Assembly (NCBI RefSeq): GCF_003704095.1 | Contig: NW_020847002.1 | Location: 1-64,000 of the forward strand | Origin: Pocillopora damicornis | Taxonomy: Eukaryota | Direction of reading: 5' to 3' | DNA: 64,000 nt | Part shown: in pieces, positions 3,887 to 64,000 of the stretch | Layout of the letters: every line of letters begins with the position of its first letter | Position numbering within the stretch: the first letter of the stretch is position 1 | Translations under genes and position numbers: made by a program | The notes under the pieces: model-generated | Seen by the model: the letters and a program-made list of their open reading frames with translations, nothing else | What the model was told of the DNA's origin: nothing | Databases searched by the model: none

Positions 3887-4915
3887 ATGAATATTACCAA
3901 CACCTCGTCAACCTCCAATCCAGTTTTCATTCCACCAGAGGTGAAGACAGCTCTTTACTCGAGTATTTTTGTCCTTGGGTTGTTTGGGAACTCTTTCGTT
4001 ATTACAGTTTTGGCCAGAAAAAGGTCTTCTCGCACCTGCCATGACATCTTCATCTGCAATCTTGCAATATCTGATCTAATTCTTCTCCTGACATATTTTC
4101 CTATGTTTTTTGCCCATGCTGTAGGAAACTTTAAAGCACCGAGAGTATTTTGCAAGCTGATATGGCCATTGATCACAATTTCGTATCTCTCCAGCATCTT
4201 AATCATCACATCTATGGCTATTCATCGCTCCAGGATGATTGTTAATCCTTACACTTCCGAAATAAGTCGAAGAAATGTCTACATCTGGATTTTCTGTTTG
4301 TGGATCATGTCGTTTGTTTGTATTCTGCCTGGAATGGTTTTTGCTGAGGTCAATCGAATGGGAATGTGCCACGTAGCTTGGCCTTCAGTGGAAGCTCACG
4401 TAGTATTTCGATTTTTCATGTTAATGGTTCAGTATCTCTTGCCATTGACAATAACAGCAGTCGCCTACATACGCATTGGGCTGGCCATAAATAGATCTAA
4501 ATTTCACCGTAAGTTTTCAAAGCAGCCCAAAGCCCTGAGCCAGACGCGACGGCGAGAAAACGCACAGGTTGTGCGGACCATAGCAACAATTGTGATAATA
4601 TTCGCTATTTGTATGTTTCCGAAACATCTGGCCTCTATCTACTATTACTTCGGAGAAAATGGCAAGGAAAAGGGAAAAATCCTCTTCAGGCTTCTCCATA
4701 TTTCCGAGATTTTCGCTGTTTTTCACAGTTGTTTAAATCCGCTTGTTTACGGCACAGTCATGAAGCATTTTCGCGCTGAGTACTTTAAATACCTTCAAGG
4801 TATCTTCTGTTATTGCTGGAAAACACGTGCAGAAAGAATGTCCAATCCAGGAGATCAAATGACTTCCTTAAATGACCCGCGGTCCTCCAGTAAAATGACT
4901 GCTTCGTCAGAATAG
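3887..4915 (+). CDS. Class A GPCR, peptide-receptor-like (galanin/allatostatin-A-like), intronless CDS
   Basis: 342 aa with 7 hydrophobic segments: TM1 GN, TM2 LAISD, TM3 HRS in place of DRY, TM5 YLLP, TM6 CMFP, TM7 NPLVY. N-terminal N-glycosylation sequons. Confidence 0.93.
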   Translation: MNITNTSSTSNPVFIPPEVKTALYSSIFVLGLFGNSFVITVLARKRSSRTCHDIFICNLAISDLILLLTYFPMFFAHAVGNFKAPRVFCKLIWPLITISYLSSILIITSMAIHRSRMIVNPYTSEISRRNVYIWIFCLWIMSFVCILPGMVFAEVNRMGMCHVAWPSVEAHVVFRFFMLMVQYLLPLTITAVAYIRIGLAINRSKFHRKFSKQPKALSQTRRRENAQVVRTIATIVIIFAICMFPKHLASIYYYFGENGKEKGKILFRLLHISEIFAVFHSCLNPLVYGTVMKHFRAEYFKYLQGIFCYCWKTRAERMSNPGDQMTSLNDPRSSSKMTASSE

Positions 4916-5312: not shown

Positions 5313-6398
5313 CTATATTATTTTCGGGATCAGTGCGGTTGATTGAGTGGGTCCTCGGTAATCCATTTCTAGTAGATCTGTGGTTTGTCCACCTCTTGTC
5401 CATGTATTGAACCTCTCGCTAGCTTGGTGCTGTTGACACGGTTTTGCTTGGAGAATTCTTTTGTAGCGACAAACGAGAGTAGATTTGAGATATTGAACGT
5501 AATCTTGGCGAAACTGGCGAGTTACTGTCCCGTAGATTAAAGGGTTCAAACAACTGTGAAATACAGCTAATAAGTCGGAAAATTTGAAAATAACTTCTGC
5601 TGTCTTCCGGCCACCATTGCCACCAAAATCGACCAGCAACCAGGCTACGTGAGTGGGAAGCATGCACACAGCAAAGGAAACAACTATGGTTGCAAGTACT
5701 TTGGCAATTTTTTTGTTTTCTTGTTTCCTCGCCTCTTCCGCAGGTCTTGGCGGGGAAGTAAAAGACCTACGCCGCTTTGAGAAAAAGAGTTCTCCCCCAA
5801 TCATGACATATGCAACAGCAATGATGATTAGAGGAAGGAAGTATTGGAGCGCGGCGAGCACAGCAGTATAACCTCGCTTGTGCTCTTTTGTAGGCCAATC
5901 TTCAAGACAGCCTCCTGATGGTCCAACTCTAGCCACGATGATAAGTGGCAGGGCAACAAGAAAAGAAAGAACCCAAATAACCAAAAAACACAAAAAGAGC
6001 TGCCTTTTTTCAAGTACTCCCTCGAAAGGGCGAAGGATTGCTTTGCAACGATGAACTGCCATCAAGGTCACGGTAAAAATCCCTGCACAAAAGGATACAG
6101 TCATCATAGGCCAGATAATCTTGCAGTACACTAACGATCCGAGGAAATCAGACACTTGCATGTAGATAAATACTGGTAAACATAAAAGAATAAAACTTAA
6201 ATCAGAAACCGCCAAATGGATGATAAAAATGTCGTTTAAAGTACGAGTGTGCTTCTTGGCGACGACGAGGAGAACCAGAAGATTTCCTGTAGAGCCAAAT
6301 AAGAAAGTCAAAACAAAGATCGTTAGAGTGGCCATTCTTGCTGCTTCGTCGACTGCCGTGCCCCGTTTGTTGTTAAAAATATCCGATGAAATATTCAT
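5313..6398 (-). CDS. Class A GPCR, paralogue of 3887 and 13091
   Basis: 361 aa; GN, LAVSD, CKIIWP, HRC, QYFLP, CMLP, FHSCLNPLIYG. Confidence 0.93.
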   Translation of the reverse strand: MNISSDIFNNKRGTAVDEAARMATLTIFVLTFLFGSTGNLLVLLVVAKKHTRTLNDIFIIHLAVSDLSFILLCLPVFIYMQVSDFLGSLVYCKIIWPMMTVSFCAGIFTVTLMAVHRCKAILRPFEGVLEKRQLFLCFLVIWVLSFLVALPLIIVARVGPSGGCLEDWPTKEHKRGYTAVLAALQYFLPLIIIAVAYVMIGGELFFSKRRRSFTSPPRPAEEARKQENKKIAKVLATIVVSFAVCMLPTHVAWLLVDFGGNGGRKTAEVIFKFSDLLAVFHSCLNPLIYGTVTRQFRQDYVQYLKSTLVCRYKRILQAKPCQQHQASERFNTWTRGGQTTDLLEMDYRGPTQSTALIPKII

Positions 6399-13090: not shown

Positions 13091-14209
13091 ATGTCTGCGA
13101 ATTCAACTCAACTTACACAAAGCCCTACGGAAAGAAATGTGCGCTTGGGTTTTTACATCGCCACTTTTGTTATTGGACTTATCGGAAACCTTCTGGTGCT
13201 AATCGTAATCATTGCCAAGCGAGCAAAGAAAACTGTCAACGATTTGTTCATCATGAATTTAGCTGTGTCGGACCTGATGCTTATCTTCTTTCTCCCGCTG
13301 CATATCTACAATATGTTTGACACTATTCGTGTCACGGTATTTTTCTGCCATTTTATTCGTCCTCTCATGACAGCATCGTTCTTCGTCAGTGTCTACACCC
13401 TCACCTCAATGGCCATCCATCGGTGTCACGTGATCTTACATCCCTTCAAACAGGAAATTCGCCACAGGTCTGCTGTTTTATGGATAATAGTGCTGTGGAT
13501 CATGTCATTTGCAAATGTTCTTCCATTGATGATTGTCACCACACCTTACCCACCATTCGAATGTCTTGAAAAATGGCCGAGTCTGAGTCACAGGCGAGCA
13601 TATACAGCTGCACTCTTTGTTCTTCAGTACATCCTTCCACTGGTGATCATCGCAATAGCATATATCAGAATAGGTTTAGATCTGAACCGCTCATGTTCTC
13701 GTAGTTTCCGGAATGCCAGGGCTGCCAAAAGCCCGGAGAACCAGGCAAGACGGCGAGAAAACTTTAAAGTAACTAAAACTCTGGCAATAATCGTAATGAT
13801 ATTTGCTGTGTGTATGCTACCCAGTCAAGTGGGATGGATGTTGTTGGATTTTGGTGACAAAGAACAAAAAGCGATTGCCATCAAGGTGGTTTTTAAATTT
13901 TCCCTTGTTCTTACAGTGTTTCACAGTTGCCTGAATCCTCTTGTTTATGGAAGCATCACTAAACAGTTTCGTCGTGGCTACATCAGATATCTGTCGTATT
14001 TCTGTTGCTGCTTTAGAGGTTCCATCCTAAGAGAGTTTAAGATCATTTCAGAAAGCTCGTCACAAAATCGCCGTGACGACTTCAAACACACGCACAATGG
14101 ACTTAAAAGAAATGGCGAACTCGAAACGATATGTTCTTTAAAATCAAGAGAAATTCAAGATGAATCATCTTCAAGCAACGAGATATTTGACGTTGTGACC
14201 GTAATATAG
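13091..14209 (+). CDS. Class A GPCR, paralogue of 3887 and 5313
   Basis: 372 aa; GN, LAVSD, HRC, QYILP, CMLP, FHSCLNPLVYG, C-terminal CCC palmitoylation-type motif. Likely 5' UTR intron acceptor TCTTTGCAG near 12944. Confidence 0.94.
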   Translation: MSANSTQLTQSPTERNVRLGFYIATFVIGLIGNLLVLIVIIAKRAKKTVNDLFIMNLAVSDLMLIFFLPLHIYNMFDTIRVTVFFCHFIRPLMTASFFVSVYTLTSMAIHRCHVILHPFKQEIRHRSAVLWIIVLWIMSFANVLPLMIVTTPYPPFECLEKWPSLSHRRAYTAALFVLQYILPLVIIAIAYIRIGLDLNRSCSRSFRNARAAKSPENQARRRENFKVTKTLAIIVMIFAVCMLPSQVGWMLLDFGDKEQKAIAIKVVFKFSLVLTVFHSCLNPLVYGSITKQFRRGYIRYLSYFCCCFRGSILREFKIISESSSQNRRDDFKHTHNGLKRNGELETICSLKSREIQDESSSSNEIFDVVTVI

Positions 14210-14869
14210 AGAGGACTTTAAAAATGTCGCACTGTATCGTTTAGAGATAGAATAACCTTCCAGTGTGTTTTGAGATTTATACAGCAATGACACAAAATAC
14301 ATATCCTTAACTTTGTTGTAAGCCGGGATAAAATGTATAGTCTGCACAATACATCCTATGGAGTACAAGAATATATTTGCCTATCTATTTAGTATTTGCT
14401 GTCGGATGTTTTACTCGTGATTAACTTTCTGTTCCCTAAGTTTTCAGTGTCCTTCAACAAGTTCAAGAACGTGCCGGTCAGTAGGGCGGCTATTGGTTTA
14501 TGATATGAACGCAATTTATATGATGTTGTTAAATGTATTTTGACCACTGAATGGTCAACATCTTGAATTATGTATTGTGTTTTATAGCTGAAACACATGC
14601 AACTACGTCAACTTAAGATTTAATGGGCAAAATTGTTTTATAAAAACAATTAACCATACAACCATTTGTTAACAAAATTACTGGACACCAGGGAAAAAAA
14701 GATGGTTGCATTAAGACAATGTTCTTTCTCCCTATTGCGCTATTGTGGGCGTGGTCTCTCCACATAGAGATCTGAAATCTAGAGTAAATTCGTGTACATG
14801 GATGTGGTTGTTCACAAATGAGTGCTATTCAGTCTATTCATGGCTGAACTGCGTTATATCACTATCACT

Positions 14870-17800
14870 TTAAATATACATTTGTTCCACTTTAAAACAT
14901 GGAAAGTCCATTGTAACTCTTCCTCTCAAACGGTTCATTTCTTGATTTGTCTTGTTGATATCTTGCTCAGACGCCGCAAAACGTATTTGAATTTCACGAG
15001 CTTTTTTCATGTTTTCTAATGCTTCTTCAGTTGAACCAAGGATTCCAAGAGCACATCCCAAACCATAGTAAGCTCTGGCAGTGTCCAAATGATTGTCACC
15101 TAAAATATACAAAACAAAATCAGGACTAAGAAAACTTCCACCATAAATTGTGGGAAAACCTCCAGCTGAAAATGTAAGTGGCAGTTTATCAGGATTTGAA
15201 AATGGAATGTGGTCATTACAAGGAGTGTCGGCTTATTGGCTAGCATGTTGGTTTGAGTTTGAGCCATGACCAGGTCTTTGTAATATATGCCTGAAGAGTA
15301 TGATATAACTCTTTCAGAGCTTCTATCACACAGCCTTAGTGTATTACTCAATTCACTAATTAAAAGTATTAAACAGCAAGTTGGATATTCACGTCACATT
15401 TCACGTTACTTATTGTGTTTTCTGCGGTTTCAACAACTAGCAGACATTTACCAATACTAAATCCAATCTATAATGACAATGGACAGGCACAACTTTTAGG
15501 AGTAACTAAAACCCTCTGCACTGTCTTGTCACATTTGTTATAACTCTAAAAACTCACTCAGTATTAGAAATGCAAAGTCCTATTGCATATTTCTCACATC
15601 CTGTCGTAAGGAAGGTTGTTTAAAGACCTCTGATTTGAGAATACATACCTAAAAGGTATTTCCTCATTTCAAGGGACTCTCTCTTGAACGCTACTGCACG
15701 CTTAAGATCACCAAGACACTGATAAGCATCTCCAAGGTAATGTAATAAGGAGGCTGTGAAGGGGTGTTGCCCCAGTAGCTCTCTGTATCTGACCAGACAG
15801 ATGTTTGTCCAGATGTTGACAGCAGCTCTCAAATTTCCACTGACAAACATGGCCACTACAAGAATAAAGATGAACAACAAAAAGTTATTGCCAGGTTATG
15901 GAAGATATGGGTGCATTACTTACCACTTAAAAAAAAGCTGTATTTTAATTTTTTTAAATAAAAATCATTCAACATTGAAGTGCAAAGAGCTCAGTTGTTA
16001 ATTCTCAACACTTACTAGCTAAATCACAGAAGCCACCAGCAAGAAGCATGCGTTCCACTTTACCAGATCCATCAGAGCATACCCTCCTCTTCCGTATAGC
16101 AATGCCTTGTGCTATGAGTGAGATGCCTTTCTTTTTGTCCCCAGAAATGAAAGTGCAAAGACCCAGCTTGCACTTACAGTGTCCCTCACATTCTGTACCA
16201 GAAATCGAAAGTTCACTTTGAAGTTCATGTGCTTGCTGGAGGCTTTCTTTTGCAGATGTGCGGAATGCATCCTTGTAGCCATAGTAACACAGCTGTTTAA
16301 ATCCAATGGAAACAAGACACCCACTGAGAAGGATTTTGTCATTCAGTTTCACAGCTGCCTGAGAACACTGTGAATACACAGACATAAATTCACCTATGTT
16401 TAAGACTTTTGCCAAGAAGTTCACAGCATTGGTAGAGATGGTCAGTCCATCACGCTTTAACTGATCATCCCCTTCTTCAACTGATGCTACAAGCGCATGA
16501 ATGATGTTAGTCTTGCTGATGTGATATTTGTCAATGGCAACTTTACCATCTGTACCAATAAATTTATCACTCAGATCTTGCAGAAGTGTAAGGTAATGCC
16601 TTGAAAAAAGTTTAATGGCTGTGTTATATTCCATGCAGGTCTCTTCCTGTGATGACTTGCAAAATGCTTGTACAAGAGGATGCAAGCTATAGTATAGATG
16701 ATTGTTGACTTCATCTAGCTGTACGAGTGAATGTTGCTCAAGATTGTCAAGCATGTACTGGAAATCTAGGAAATCCTCAGTTGGGAACAACACGTCTTTT
16801 GCTTCCTCTTTGGTAAATGATCTTGGGAAGGAAGCCAAAAAACCAAGTACTTTCTTCATTTCAGGTTGTAAATTGTTGTAAAATACTTTAAGATGGGAAT
16901 TTAACTCTTGAATTTTTTGGCTCTTTCCTTTCAGAAAACTGTGAGGACAGTTTTGTAGCTTTCTGTGGAGATCACTAGGGTTAACTGCCTTTTTTTTTAA
17001 AAATGATGCTGTTATGTTCAGTAGCAGGGGAATACCACGACAAGCAGTAGCAAATTCCTTTGCACTTTGACGTGAGATGTCGGGCACACAGTTCTTGAGA
17101 AAGAGCAATGAGTCTTCATTAGCTAGTGGTCTTAGGGGATAATGTTTGGTGGCAAAAGACCAGAGATCTAATGTTGAGATAGGGGTCCTGCTCGTGATAA
17201 GTGTGACAAGATTTTTGGCATGGACACCAACATTCTCCAAAAGTTTATAAAAGTTTGACTCATCTTCAGCTTGCAAGTCTTCAGCATTATCCAGAATCAG
17301 CACTGTTGGATTTCGCAGGGAAGTTAAATACCTTTTCAGCTGTGAAACTGCATCTTTCTGATCAGCATGAGAACCAACTGCTTCCTTTAGCAAGTATTCC
17401 GCTGCACATGCAAGAGACGACACTGATCTGAGGCACATGTATATCACATCTTTTTTTCCTTGACTCAGTATCATGTTTCCGACAGTTTTGGCAAGTGCAG
17501 TTTTTCCAAATCCTGGAGGGGCAACAACAGTGACAAGGCAAGTTATGTCATCCTCATCTGTGGTCAACAACCCTGTGATTTCTTCACAAATATCCATCCT
17601 TCCAACAAAATTAGGAACCTTTCTGGGAAGGCCAATAGATCTTGGTCTCCATTCATTACCCTCACTGGGCTGTACACCTGCAAATAAAAAAAATTAAAAT
17701 ATTTTTAGTGACCACTACAACTCAGTAATTGCATCATTCAGTGCATTATGAGTAAATATGTGGTAATACCTAGCCACATTCCTCCCTTTTGAATTAAGGC

Positions 17801-19042
17801 TTTTTCAAGATGAGTATAAACCCCTCCTCCTTGAAAATCTCCAGATATACTCCCTCTCAAATATGAAAAACTTTTTAACAAGAAAATATTTGATTAAATC
17901 TGCCTCATAAAAATGCCATTTGGTCAAACAACATCACTTTTATCAACTAAGACCAGTGACAAATACATTCATTGACACCTGCACCAATAGAACTGCATTT
18001 GAAAATTTCAATGAACTGGCTACCGAGAGAACTTTAGAATATTAATTATGAAAGGTACTTTTTCCCACTGTGAAATATATTTCAAGTGAGCAACCAGCAA
18101 TTTCTGGGCTAGATTTCCAACAAAACTGGCCTTCTCAAATTTTTTTTCCAAAGGAAATCCCCTCTGCAATGGGTGAAGGGCATGAACATTTTCTGGAACT
18201 AGACATAATTGCCAAAAGAACCCAAATGATTTAGGGCTGTAATTACAGAAAGATCTTCTTTACACTGAGCAATTTTCAAGCAAGTAAATGGCAGTAAAAA
18301 TAGAGATAATGCAAATTATAGAAAGAGGCTTCACTGAAAATGTTTATTTAGGTAGCAGATAAAGATGATTTAGAAGGCTTCCAAACAAACTTTGTACACT
18401 TTTGAAAAAAACAATGGTACTAGTTTAGCAAACAAACTGTCACGACAAGTTTTTCTTCAAAAAATTCAATGATCTCACGGAAAGTATCATACACTTCCAT
18501 CGATATTATTGTGGAAGAATATCTTTGTTCAGTCAGTAAATGGCTAGGAAAGTAATTGCAAGTAAATTTATTGACAAGTTTTGAACTTGTGGGCATTTGC
18601 TCATTTGTTTGCTGCATTGACGCGTGTAAATCTGGCCTTTTTTAACCATAACACTAAAATAAAATGAGACACCTTTATTAGACCCAAGGAGAATTTAGTA
18701 CGGTTTTTCTTNNNNNNNNNNNNNNNNNNNNNNNNNNNNNNNNNNNNNNNNNNNNNNNNNNNNNNNNNNNNNNNNNNNNNNNNNNNNNNNNNNNNNNNNN
18801 NNNNNNNNNNNGCCATGAAGAGCATTCAAAAACGATTCAAAAGCATCAGGACCACTTCGAGAAAGCTCATCCAAGAGGCAAAATGCCTTCCCCTCACTTG
18901 TAGTTTGAGCAAGAATGGATTCTTTGCTTGCTTCGTCCAAAATTTCTTTGGTAAACAGTACTTCTGTTATTCTCCTTGCATCAATATTTCGCGAGATGTG
19001 AAGCCGAAACTTTCTTAAGACTTTCCTGTGTGATTCCTCCAT
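14870..19042 (-). CDS. CARD (death-fold) - NB-ARC/STAND NTPase - TPR protein, APAF-1/NLR-like architecture
   Basis: Exons: 19042-~18812 (CARD-like MEESHRKVLRKFR...LLDELSRSGPDAFESFLNAL, runs into a gap), 17677-16016, 15855-15649, 15099-14870. The last three are joined in phase by GT-AG introns. Motifs: LP..FVGR, Walker A APPGFGKT, Walker B LILDNAED, LITSR, GIPL, LHPLVQ, then TPRs of the LGQHPFTASLLHYLG / LGDNHLDTARAYYGLG type. The CARD-to-NTPase junction is unresolved. Confidence 0.85.
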
Positions 19043-19096
19043 GTTCTAACATATCAGGAAAAGTTATTTCTGAGTAAAGCAAACGTTTTCGGCCAG

Positions 19097-19340
19097 TTTA
19101 TAGGACGACCTCTCAGTTACTGGCTTTACGGAACAAGGTCCTTCAAGCTTTCCGGGAAATTCCGGAAATTATAGAAGAACGCCTGCGTGGTGAGGCCACC
19201 GGAAACTGAACCCAGCTCAGCCCACCATGAACAATAGTAATGGAAAGTCCCGCCTGCCCTTTTGTACGATACAAACCAATCATTACAAAATAAACATTTT
19301 CCACGGGGAAACTGGCCCAGTTCTCTTCGAAATGTAAACA
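19097..19340 (-). promoter_or_regulatory. Proximal promoter of the CARD-STAND-TPR gene with TATA, STAT, NF-kB, ETS and IRF-like motifs
   Basis: TATAAA on minus at 19102-19097; TTCCGGGAA 19150-19158; GGGAAATTCC 19154-19163; CCGGAAACTGAAC 19199-19211; GGGACTTTCC on minus at 19251-19242; CCAAT 19276-19280; GTAAACA 19334-19340. Confidence 0.7.
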
Positions 19341-63276: not shown

Positions 63277-64000
63277 TCAGCTGTAACGAATCATACAAGA
63301 CTTCACCATCTTTCTCATTGTCTTCCGAAAGTTAGCGCTTCGTACGCAGTAGATGTATGGATTTAAAGAGGCATTTAAATAGTATATTATGTTAATCCAG
63401 TTCTGTATGTCGAAGTATCGTGGATCACTTGGAAAAACTACTGAGTAAAATATAAGAGCTGGGATCCATGCAGCACAAAATACACCAAGAATTATTGCCA
63501 TTGTTCTCGTCGACTTTCGTTCATGTAAGAAGTTTGTATTTCTTTGCACGTTTGAAATCTGCAAGCTGGCAATCTGTCTTTCTTTTTTCAGAGCAAACAG
63601 GAAGATATGAATGTACAAAAATATTGTCACCAACATGATGACAGTGCAGTATGCAGGCTGTATATATATAAAGTTTAGTACCATAAAAACAGCTGATATA
63701 AATGCCCCTAACAGCCACGTAAGGGAGATAATGACGACAGCACGTCGTTTTGTCATCATAGAAGTGTACTTGAATGGATATTTAATGGATAAAATACGGT
63801 CTACAGCGATCGATAATAAACTTGAGACTGCAGCAGGCGCGATAAACTGTGAAAGTCCACGATTTGCCACAACAAACGTTTCTGGGACGTGACAAAAACC
63901 TTTCCTGCACATATATTTATAGATACCACCAGGAGAGACGACAAACAGACTTAATAAATCAATTAGGGCCAGGTTTCCAAGAAGTAGGTTAGATGGTGTT
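63277..64000 (-). CDS. Class A GPCR (adenosine/amine-receptor-like), 5' end beyond the window
   Basis: Open frame from the window edge: PSNLLLGNLALIDLL, AVDRILSIKYPFKY, ERKSTRTMAIILGVFCAAWIP, NASLNPYIY. Confidence 0.9.
   Translation of the reverse strand, partial: TPSNLLLGNLALIDLLSLFVVSPGGIYKYMCRKGFCHVPETFVVANRGLSQFIAPAAVSSLLSIAVDRILSIKYPFKYTSMMTKRRAVVIISLTWLLGAFISAVFMVLNFIYIQPAYCTVIMLVTIFLYIHIFLFALKKERQIASLQISNVQRNTNFLHERKSTRTMAIILGVFCAAWIPALIFYSVVFPSDPRYFDIQNWINIIYYLNASLNPYIYCVRSANFRKTMRKMVKSCMIRYS

Follow-up and report, generated by a model that had tools for sequence, protein, structure and literature searches.

The known animal proteins of the NB-ARC clade, such as APAF-1, CED-4 and Dark, activate caspases. 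In APAF-1, the WD40 part reads cytochrome c. An architecture in which a CARD, Death or DED head is followed by an NB-ARC or NACHT NTPase and by TPRs has already been described in corals, sea anemones and placozoans (Zmasek 2007, PMC2246300; Hamada 2013, summarised in PMC4083563 and PMC7642931; Kamm 2019, PMC6321704). The same set of surveys gives 57 TPR-bearing members for Acropora digitifera. Placozoan members mostly have a CARD as their head, followed by repeats of the WD40 or TPR kind (Kamm 2019, PMC6321704). The expanded CED-4/Apaf-1 homologues and the NACHT/NB-ARC-TPR "NLR-like" proteins of cnidarians, amphioxus, sea urchin and placozoans belong to the same architecture class as the gene addressed here. 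The cnidarian and placozoan surveys describe counts and lineage-specific expansions, whereas this coral gene is single-copy, syntenic and under purifying selection. It lies in Pocillopora damicornis, within a window of 64 kb, which is the whole stretch of DNA that was analysed.

A four-exon gene and its transcripts

The locus is a four-exon stony-coral gene, intact and transcribed, which runs on the minus strand from the ATG at 19042 to the TAA at 14870 and encodes 791 amino acids. A CARD exon is followed by a 1662-nt STAND NTPase exon and by two TPR_12 exons (19042..14870), and all introns are in phase 1. The three modules, CARD, STAND NTPase and TPR, occur on the minus strand, in the interval that an earlier note on this DNA had given for them. 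The features, in the order of transcription, are listed below.

19043..19152, minus strand, 5' UTR, minimum extent (RNA contigs extend to 19102, 19111 and 19152)
18812..19042, minus strand, exon 1, visible part: ATG at 19042, 77 codons, CARD helices 1-5
18712..18811, assembly gap of 100 N, covering the last 46 nt of exon 1, the donor and the start of intron 1
17678..18711, minus strand, intron 1, visible part, phase 1, acceptor TTTGCAG/GT (RNA joint 18812 to 17680)
16650..17677, minus strand, exon 2, first part: FVGR linker, then NBD-HD1-WHD of the STAND NTPase
16016..16649, minus strand, exon 2, second part: ten-helix arm in the style of HD2 or degenerate TPRs, by the helices of the model
15856..16015, minus strand, intron 2, 160 nt, phase 1, GT..AG (RNA joint in three runs)
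15649..15855, minus strand, exon 3, 207 nt, TPR_12/TPR_10 repeats, the most conserved part
15100..15648, minus strand, intron 3, 549 nt, phase 1, GT..AG (RNA joint, "cut +2")
14870..15099, minus strand, exon 4, 230 nt: last TPR_12 repeat, C-terminal tail, stop TAA at 14870-14872 (RNA-covered)
14322..14869, minus strand, 3' UTR, approximate (RNA contigs go 76, 298 and 378 letters past 14700)

The 5' UTR is given as a minimum because the contigs cannot set the start site, and the 3' UTR holds one signal of the AATAAA/ATTAAA type, which starts at 14624. In each of three polyA runs from two studies, one RNA contig crosses all four exons. The path runs from 19102 or beyond to 18812, through 43 letters, then 17680..16016, 15855..15647 and from 15097 to below 14700, with GT..AG ends. 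Between these contigs and the window, about 0.8% of the positions differ, and the RNA source is therefore a near-identical genotype or a sister species, not surely the assembled individual. The visible parts of the exons, outside the gap, are all open for reading. Searched with the four exons by tblastn, the whole 64 kb contains no second copy.

The assembly gap falls at the end of exon 1. It hides 46 nt, or about 15 codons, in which CARD helix 6 would lie. The RNA contigs place 43 letters between 18812 and 17680 and keep the frame. Exon 1 therefore measures 277 nt, made of the 231 visible letters, the 43 letters of the RNA contigs and the CAG aligned at 17680-17678. This length gives phase 1, as exon 2 requires, because the frame of exon 2 has a codon from 17678. 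The linkage of the CARD exon to the NTPase exon, which the earlier note had assumed, is thus borne out as a splice in all three runs. In run X18, DNA contigs reach into the gap on each side, with loose ends of 205 and more than 255 letters that do not join up again, and the real gap may therefore be longer than 100. Domain searches and fold models were run exon by exon, and whole-length comparisons used the Stylophora database protein P0002.

The modules and their relatives

The translated CARD exon (18812-19042) matches Pfam CARD PF00619 at 39.7 bits (cut-off 23.9, E 4.8e-10), or 38.5 bits in the scan of its own genome, and CARD_2 at 29.5 bits (cut-off 28.2). The match ends early, at position 71 of the 85 in the profile, because the gap cuts exon 1. 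The AlphaFold model of the 77 residues (pLDDT 82) has five helices, at 3-19, 22-31, 37-44, 49-61 and 65-76. Its Foldseek matches in the PDB are almost all CARDs, e.g., those of APAF-1 and NOD1, with TMq about 0.8. The visible part therefore folds as the death fold that had been proposed for it; of the "six-helix CARD" the CARD fold stands, while the helix count is unreadable because the sixth helix lies within the gap. The closest solved sequence relative in the PDB profile search is the CARD of RAIDD (E 3.7e-7). CARD9 and BCL10 are weaker matches than RAIDD, yet they stand above caspase-9 and APAF-1 among the solved structures. CARD-CARD similarity is not a predictor of binding, and the matches to RAIDD, CARD9 and BCL10 leave room for a non-caspase adaptor.

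The NTPase carries a complete series of motifs, all of them read directly, as the earlier note had listed them: FVGR (17598-17609), the P-loop or Walker A motif APPGFGKT (17499-17522), Walker B LILDNAED (17277-17300), sensor-1 ITSR (17187-17198), GxP as GIPLL (17022-17036) and LHPL (16674-16685). In the AlphaFold model, the LHP, with its His at the MHD position, comes after a beta-hairpin at 318-331. Across 23 homologues, the P, G, G and K of the P-loop, the D-N-x-E of Walker B, T-x-R, G-x-P-L and L-H-P-L are invariant. The classical P-loop pattern is [AG]xxxxGK[ST], and the Ala at the first position fits it and is therefore not unusual. The Walker B Asp is followed by Asn and no acid, so the protein may hydrolyse its nucleotide slowly or not at all.

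The assignment of this NTPase to one family is less simple. Pfam NB-ARC matches at 33.3-33.4 bits (cut-off 23.5) over positions 5 to 247 of the 248 in the profile, which cover NBD, ARC1 and ARC2, and AAA_22 matches as well, while NACHT reaches 26.6-26.7 bits at a cut-off of 26.7. Among the 23 homologues, NB-ARC is matched in 14 and NACHT in 16. The Walker B pattern of NACHT proteins is D-G-x-D-E, and the D-N-A-E-D of the coral NTPase resembles it more than the D-D of APAF-1. The best PDB profile matches are Sr35 (E 3.5e-14), NRC4, AfsR (5e-12) and APAF-1 (2.6e-11). Foldseek matches the AlphaFold model (pLDDT 87) to PH0952 (6mfv, the top match), APAF-1, plant resistosomes and CED-4; the matches listed include MalT and Avs3 as well. 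No NACHT-LRR receptor occurs among the best 60 PDB profile matches or the approximately 50 Foldseek matches listed. Among the matches listed, those nearest to the NTPase by profile and fold are plant NLRs, AfsR, APAF-1 and an archaeal TPR-STAND, and in Pfam it is borderline for NB-ARC and for NACHT alike. The label "NB-ARC-type" of the earlier note is the better one, though not a clean one, given the NACHT score at its cut-off and the NACHT-like Walker B.

The arm occupies model residues 343-553 (211 residues) and forms ten helices. Its search (16008-16649) gives no TPR and no other Pfam family even at E 10, and it is the helix hairpins of the model that suggest a TPR-like arm. The C-terminal TPRs that had been claimed are found above cut-off in both last exons: TPR_12 scores 34.2 bits in exon 3 and 31.4 bits in exon 4 (cut-off 30.1), and exon 3 also matches TPR_10 (28.2 against 27.5), so that the repeats are of the KLC type. 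The recognisable array is short, with about three repeats.

Like APAF-1, CED-4 and Dark, the coral protein has an N-terminal CARD, then NBD-HD1-WHD and a helical arm, and it shares with them the P-loop, the sensor-1 Arg, GxP and the WHD His. To APAF-1, the likeness extends to the profile match given above and to fold matches with both the ADP-bound form and the active apoptosome (TMq about 0.5 over about 530 columns, with 526-536 for the apoptosome). It differs in its TPR sensor, where APAF-1 has WD40 propellers, in the Walker B, in its single CARD as compared with two CARD exons at the coral APAF-1 locus, and in its lower NB-ARC score of 33-35 bits, as compared with 138 bits for the canonical APAF-1. 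The NTPase has its best profile matches in plant CC-NLRs (Sr35, NRC2/4, ZAR1; E 3.5e-14 to 1e-11), whose resistosomes superpose with an rmsd of 4-6 Å over about 360 columns. The head of these plant proteins, however, is a coiled coil and their sensor an LRR, they come from another kingdom, and their likeness to the coral NTPase is limited to the NB-ARC core. The prokaryotic STAND-TPR proteins AfsR, PH0952, MalT and Avs3 share the NTPase-plus-TPR chassis, and a bacterial-like HTH-P-loop-TPR_12 protein (P0069) is among the matches of the homologue search. Unlike the coral protein, the prokaryotic ones carry a DNA-binding or nuclease head and no death-fold head, have no introns and show 12-22% identity. 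With plant NLRs, APAF-1, CED-4 and TPR-STANDs as the top matches, "apoptosome-like", the term already used in the earlier note, is the best analogy.

Two stricter assignments were rejected. The gene is not an APAF-1 orthologue, since Pfam finds no WD40 in its C-terminus, which is TPR_12, and the canonical APAF-1 is a separate locus on contig C1619 (NB-ARC 138 bits, two CARD exons). It is not an animal NLR in the strict NACHT-LRR sense, since neither its exons nor the named orthologues match any LRR family in Pfam.

Orthologues, paralogues and selection

The whole protein is 99% identical in P. verrucosa, 86% in Stylophora and 48-52% in Acropora and Montipora. For the visible part of the CARD, identity with residues 1-77 is 96% in P. 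verrucosa and 90% in Stylophora. The Stylophora locus is free of gaps and has four exons of matching order, spacing and size; its 277, 1662, 207 and 230 nt are exactly the sizes inferred for Pocillopora, and its exon 1 ends CAG/GT. In both genera, the downstream neighbour is a convergent 7tm_1 GPCR. Six named orthologues hold CARD, P-loop and TPR in a single protein. Acropora and Montipora have two lineage-specific copies each. No paper that uses the LOC identifiers of the orthologues was found in the literature searched. The STAND phylogeny proposed in the earlier note was done as a quick tree with a midpoint root, SH-aLRT as its only support, and two partial sequences (L007, L011) and most unnamed hits left out. 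It places the orthologues in a clade with SH-aLRT 100 and a long stem, apart from the paralogues of the same genome.

The gene is under purifying selection, and its orthologue group is conserved in both major stony-coral lineages. Against Stylophora, dN/dS is 0.14 for the CARD, 0.28 for the NOD, 0.33 for the arm, 0.10 for exon 3 and 0.30 for exon 4. Exon 3 is 94% identical to that of Stylophora and 62-64% to that of Acropora. A low dN/dS over whole domains is still compatible with a few positively selected contact sites.

Within its own genome, exon 2 has 26 matches, or 25 besides the gene itself, the nearest paralogue being 33% identical in the genome search and 32% by tblastn. The nearest paralogues (26-32% identity) have a matching exon layout and a DED or Death head, such as DED, NB-ARC and TPR_12 on contig C472, or Death, P-loop and TPR_12 on C3883. 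Read from the sequence alone, the DED head exon on C472 has a consensus phase-1 donor and a matching phase-1 acceptor. None of the approximately 20 CARD exons in the genome lies on a paralogue-bearing contig. The gene is single-copy in the genome and the sole CARD-headed member. Possible partners are also present. Caspase exons on C2633, C3714 and C905 have CARD exons 1.4-4 kb upstream, and within the genome the CARD of the window is most like these three (35, 34 and 31% identity), together with the CARD on C1975. Most of the CARD exons are not beside a caspase exon. The CARD-Death (RAIDD-like) gene on C1211 has a CARD with no significant similarity to that of the window.

Proposed function and its alternatives

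The explanation that we prefer as a whole, and consider probable, is that this intact gene encodes a nucleotide-switched, oligomerising adaptor, which recruits a CARD caspase in response to a conserved cue. At rest, the NTPase would hold ADP and be kept closed by the arm and the TPRs, and the invariant His of the LHP would sit on the nucleotide. A cue bound on the TPR side would let the nucleotide be exchanged and a ring assemble. The CARDs, clustered in this way, may then draw in and activate a partner with a CARD of its own, for which one of the three CARD caspases is the most likely candidate. Since conservation extends over the whole protein and is strongest in the TPR exon, with no expansion in the genome, a conserved cue is favoured over a fast-evolving pathogen effector. 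Such a cue would be a danger signal from the host itself, or else a microbial or symbiont molecule that does not vary.

In a classical non-self receptor from the NLR-like repertoire that has expanded in cnidarians, by comparison, the TPR side would bind a variable molecule of a pathogen, virus or symbiont in an arms race, and the output would still be CARD-mediated death or inflammation. This fits a family of several members, which have exchanged their death-fold heads and in part lie in tandem clusters, of a kind that surveys take as immune receptors (PMC4083563, PMC7642931), and it fits the two lineage-specific copies each in Acropora and Montipora and the bacterial TPR-STAND Avs3 among the fold matches. 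It is nevertheless unlikely, given one copy in the genome, a nearest paralogue at about 32-33% identity, exon lengths as in Stylophora, conserved synteny, and dN/dS values of 0.10-0.33 with TPR exon 3 as the most conserved segment. The output itself could differ, with the CARD signalling to a non-caspase adaptor (BCL10-, CARD9- or RAIDD-like) and on to transcription of the NF-kB/MAPK type. The ranking of RAIDD, CARD9 and BCL10 above caspase-9 and APAF-1 among solved relatives points this way, as do the CARD exons that mostly lie away from caspase exons, including that of the CARD-Death gene. We regard it as doubtful, because the closest relatives of the window's CARD in the genome are the three caspase CARDs, with no significant similarity to the RAIDD-like CARD, and because APAF-1, CED-4 and Dark act through caspases.

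It could also be argued that the CARD and NTPase exons come from different genes joined by a mis-scaffolded gap, or that the copy is broken inside the gap, which is of uncertain length, lies exactly at the end of exon 1 and is left unbridged by the X18 DNA contigs. This is hardly credible, since in each of three runs one RNA contig links the two sides of the gap in frame, the gap-free Stylophora locus matches in its four exons, the six named orthologues carry CARD, P-loop and TPR, and the visible exons are open and under purifying selection.

The known picture of these proteins is unchanged, because publications have described this combination of domains since 2007-2013. We know of no animal STAND-TPR protein with a known ligand, and each tractable example is therefore useful. 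The caspase-recruiting adaptor proposed here is tractable, being encoded by a single-copy gene, expressed in polyA RNA, 791 residues long and conserved in both major coral lineages. Its CARD head, closest in the genome to three CARD caspases, gives a short and testable list of partners. The NB-ARC-TPR chassis is, in addition, a clean natural case in which a separate first exon is CARD, DED or Death. Caspase-dependent death is tied to coral bleaching and disease. A stronger reading, which we hold to be improbable, is that stony corals have a second, APAF-1-independent apoptosome, formed by this one conserved CARD-NB-ARC-TPR adaptor. Its strongly conserved TPR module would read a host-derived or symbiosis-related cue, much as the WD40 part of APAF-1 reads cytochrome c, and the adaptor would fire one of the CARD caspases. 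If true, this second apoptosome would be a dedicated, ligand-defined switch of cell death, relevant to bleaching or to the control of symbionts.

Gene model across the gap in exon 1

The genome searched comprises 234,350,878 bases in 4393 contigs, and the window has a G+C content of 35-40%. The earlier note had placed a CARD - STAND NTPase - TPR gene at 14870-19042. The gene lies on the minus strand, from 19042 to 14870, and the ORF listing bears this out with four open pieces in the order expected for four exons.

Features of the window (coordinates, strand, description; Pfam bit scores with cut-offs in brackets)
19042..18695, minus, open piece of exon 1, across the N run
18812-19042, minus, visible part of exon 1: CARD, 39.7 bits (23.9)
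17597..16005, minus, open piece of exon 2; exon 2 matches AAA_22, NB-ARC at 33.3 bits (23.5; profile positions 6-247 of 248) and NACHT at 26.7 bits (exactly at cut-off)
15880..15620, minus, open piece of exon 3; TPR_12, 34.2 bits (30.1)
15112..14870, minus, open piece of exon 4; TPR_12, 31.4 bits (30.1)
13091-14209, plus, single-exon rhodopsin-family GPCR gene, convergent on the 3' end of the gene under study
3887-4915, plus, single-exon rhodopsin-family GPCR gene
5313-6398, minus, single-exon rhodopsin-family GPCR gene
63277-63912, minus, single-exon rhodopsin-family GPCR gene, partial (7tm_1 for the whole GPCR set: 157-172 bits)
38646-39740, minus, single-exon Forkhead-domain transcription factor gene, 364 aa; Forkhead, 118 bits
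56470-57081 and 58661-59215, plus, two exons of a homologue of mitochondrial ribosomal protein S30 / PDCD9; PDCD9, 52.7 and 66.5 bits

Exon 1 is interrupted after 77 codons (231 nt) by an N run at 18712-18811. The gene is expressed: when RNA contigs of three polyA runs (X1 and X10 of study P1, X3 of study P3) were aligned to 14700-19200, one contig in each run was found to start between 19152 and 19102, to continue to 18812, and then to carry 43 unplaced letters followed by 17680-16016, 15855-15647 and 15097 to below 14700. The skipped segments have GT..AG ends on the minus strand. With single contigs spanning both parts in all three runs, the CARD exon is spliced to the NTPase exons, and the objection that it might not be falls away.

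The reading frame agrees. A codon beginning at 17678 and the acceptor TTTGCAG|GT place the start of exon 2 at 17677, with one base taken from the preceding exon and intron 1 in phase 1. Exon 1 measures 231 + 43 + 3 nt (the last being the CAG aligned at 17680-17678), or 277 nt, which leaves a remainder of 1 on division by 3 and hence the same phase that exon 2 needs. An independent check is given by the gap-free Stylophora pistillata locus of the orthologue, with exons of 277, 1662, 207 and 230 nt and an exon 1 ending in CAG|GT. Exons 2-4 of the window gene are likewise 1662, 207 and 230 nt, and the total of 2376 nt (791 codons plus stop) equals the length of the Stylophora protein. The RNA contigs, the phase sum and the Stylophora exon sizes thus establish that both gap flanks belong to one transcript, in frame. 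A stop codon within the hidden 46 nt of exon 1 in this assembly is conceivable but improbable. About 0.8% of the aligned positions differ between RNA contigs and window, which points to a sister species or an almost identical genotype as the RNA source. Contigs of the DNA run X18 extend into the gap by 205 letters on the left side and by more than 255 on the right side but do not meet, so the true gap may exceed the nominal 100 N.

The first aligned positions of the RNA contigs are 19102, 19111 and 19152 (all within 19097-19340), which do not fix the transcription start site. An upstream ATG at 19051-19053 (minus strand), 11 nt before the start codon and in another frame, opens a short uORF overlapping the CDS start. 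Intron 1 contains a dispersed repeat; the depth of run X18 rises from about 6 in other parts to about 110 at 18173-18323, and there are short unrelated contigs that match at 18212-18246 only.

CARD head, NTPase core and sensor side

Domain searches were run exon by exon, not on the spliced protein. The Pfam CARD match ends at profile position 71 of 85, and five helices are readable in the AlphaFold model (pLDDT 82); the sixth would fall within the 15 hidden residues. The six-helix CARD-like exon of the earlier note therefore stands as a CARD, with five helices readable and the rest behind the gap. Among solved structures its sequence is closest to the RAIDD CARD (E 3.7e-7); the CARDs of CARD9, BCL10, caspase-9 and APAF-1 come next. 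Foldseek matches of the model, built from the 77 readable residues, are nearly all CARDs, the exceptions being a few proteins designed from the APAF-1 CARD. TMq is 0.79-0.80 for the APAF-1 and NOD1 CARDs, and the E-values are weak, which is usual for so short a chain. Given these near-exclusive CARD matches, the readable part lends no support to the suggestion that the domain does not fold as a death-fold.

In exon 2 the whole motif series (FVGR, APPGFGKT, LILDNAED, ITSR, GIPLL, LHPL) is read as claimed, and none of its key residues varies among 23 aligned homologues. The Ala replacing the first Gly of Walker A is present, but it is no anomaly, since the classical P-loop pattern [AG]xxxxGK[ST] allows Ala at that position. 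The AlphaFold model of exon 2 (pLDDT 87.4, pTM 0.81) contains a P-loop alpha/beta domain, a helical HD1 and a winged helix ending in a beta-hairpin, with LHP directly after the hairpin, and ten more helices at residues 343-553.

The label "NB-ARC-type" has to be weighed against NACHT. A profile from the 23 homologues, searched against all PDB sequences, matched best wheat Sr35 (3.5e-14), NRC4, NRC2, Streptomyces AfsR (5e-12), APAF-1 (2.6e-11), ZAR1 and the archaeal TPR-STAND protein PH0952, and no NACHT NLR was among the best 60 matches listed. Foldseek ranked PH0952 first, then APAF-1, then plant resistosomes, MalT, CED-4 and Avs3; APAF-1, both ADP-bound and in the apoptosome, gave a TMq of about 0.5 over roughly 530 columns. 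On these profile and fold matches NB-ARC-type is probably the better label, with reservations: Pfam NACHT is found in 16 of the 23 homologues against 14 for NB-ARC, and the Walker B context D-N-A-E-D is closer to the NACHT pattern than to the D-D of APAF-1.

The C-terminal TPRs are likewise present, TPR_12 scoring above cut-off in exons 3 and 4. About three KLC-type repeats are recognisable across the two exons, in the last ~145 residues only. The preceding arm of 211 residues is helical in the model, and a Pfam scan of the arm alone gave no match up to E 10.

Relatives in the genome and in other corals

Exon 2 has 26 matching places in the genome, 25 besides the window gene, the nearest paralogue being 33% identical by genome search and 32% by tblastn. 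None of the genome's CARD exons (about 20) lies on a paralogue-bearing contig; the window gene is single-copy in the genome and, within its sub-family there, alone in having a CARD head. The nearest paralogues have the same exon layout with different heads.

Paralogues and APAF-1 in the same genome
Contig C472, paralogue: DED exon (72.5 bits) 1.6 kb upstream of the NB-ARC exon, then TPR_12 exons
Contig C3883, paralogue: Death exon, then P-loop exon, then TPR_12 exons
Contig C1619, 662057-665511, minus, canonical APAF-1: NB-ARC exon (138 bits), with two CARD exons upstream at 663737-663979 and 665266-665511

From sequence, the C472 DED exon is predicted to have a consensus donor (AAG|GTTAGT) in phase 1, and its NTPase exon a phase-1 acceptor just before VPNFVGR, a motif common to the window gene, all three of whose introns are phase 1. 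Heads and repeat exons would thus be frame-compatible cassettes, consistent with the published idea that effector heads are shuffled (PMC4083563). The nearest paralogue belongs to a tandem cluster of DED-headed NB-ARC-TPR genes at 613000-690000 of C472, in which the two strands together hold at least 8 DED and 6 NTPase exons. APAF-1 is a separate locus with two CARD exons and an NB-ARC score of 138 bits, whereas the window gene has one CARD exon and 33.3 bits; the two CARDs agree with those reported for Nematostella APAF-1 (PMC2246300).

Outside this genome, the best database match to exon 2 is a Pocillopora verrucosa protein (99% identity). Full-length orthologues with CARD, P-loop and TPR_12 are found in P. 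verrucosa, Stylophora, Montipora (two) and Acropora (two), and as split gene models in Oculina and Desmophyllum. These genera cover both robust and complex coral lineages. In a quick maximum-likelihood tree (SH-aLRT support, midpoint root), the 15 included database proteins (48-99% identity) and the window protein form a 16-row clade with support of 100 and a long stem, to which the own-genome paralogues do not belong; the two copies in Acropora, like the two in Montipora, are duplicates specific to their lineage. In the comparison with Stylophora, dS is 0.23-0.44 and dN/dS is 0.14 for the CARD, 0.28 for the NOD, 0.33 for the arm, 0.10 for exon 3 and 0.30 for exon 4, whole-domain values that are compatible with a few selected sites. 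Synteny is also conserved, as a 373-residue 7tm_1 gene in Stylophora occupies the position equivalent to the GPCR gene at 13091-14209. The orthologues are named "uncharacterized protein" or "CARD domain-containing protein" in the databases, and none of the papers in the literature searched names them.

Known architecture and proposed mechanism

The CARD - NB-ARC - TPR architecture is already known. Expanded sets of CED-4/Apaf-1 homologues, with CARD, DD, DED or TIR heads and with WD40 "replaced by TPR repeats", were reported by Zmasek et al. 2007 from Nematostella, amphioxus and sea urchin (PMC2246300). For Acropora digitifera, Hamada et al. 2013, as cited in later papers, counted about 500 NACHT/NB-ARC loci; the heads are CARD, DED or Death, and 57 of the loci have TPRs (PMC4083563, PMC7642931). 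Placozoan NOD proteins combine a head that is mostly a CARD with either WD40 or TPR repeats (Kamm et al. 2019, PMC6321704). Added here are a verified gene model spanning an assembly gap, evidence that the gene is a single conserved orthologue and not part of a fast-expanding cluster, the finding that no other member of its sub-family in this genome has a CARD head, and a short list of candidate CARD partners.

Candidate partners exist in the genome. The own-genome CARDs closest to the window CARD are three caspase CARDs on contigs C2633, C3714 and C905 (35, 34 and 31% identity), where CARD exons adjoin caspase exons, plus one on C1975. A RAIDD/CRADD-like adaptor gene lies on contig C1211 at 170067-171286 (plus strand), with a CARD exon and, 0.75 kb later on the same strand, a Death exon; the within-genome CARD comparison gave no significant similarity between its CARD and that of the window gene.

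The apoptosome-like reading of the earlier note is confirmed in its observation and supported in its interpretation. By analogy with APAF-1, CED-4 and plant resistosomes, we infer a nucleotide-switched mechanism in which the resting protein would stay ADP-locked until a cue binding to the arm/TPR side released it. The nucleotide would then be exchanged and a ring would form, and the clustered CARDs would activate a CARD caspase by proximity. Constraint on the whole protein, strongest in the TPR exon, together with the single copy in the genome, makes a conserved cue more likely than a variable effector of a pathogen.
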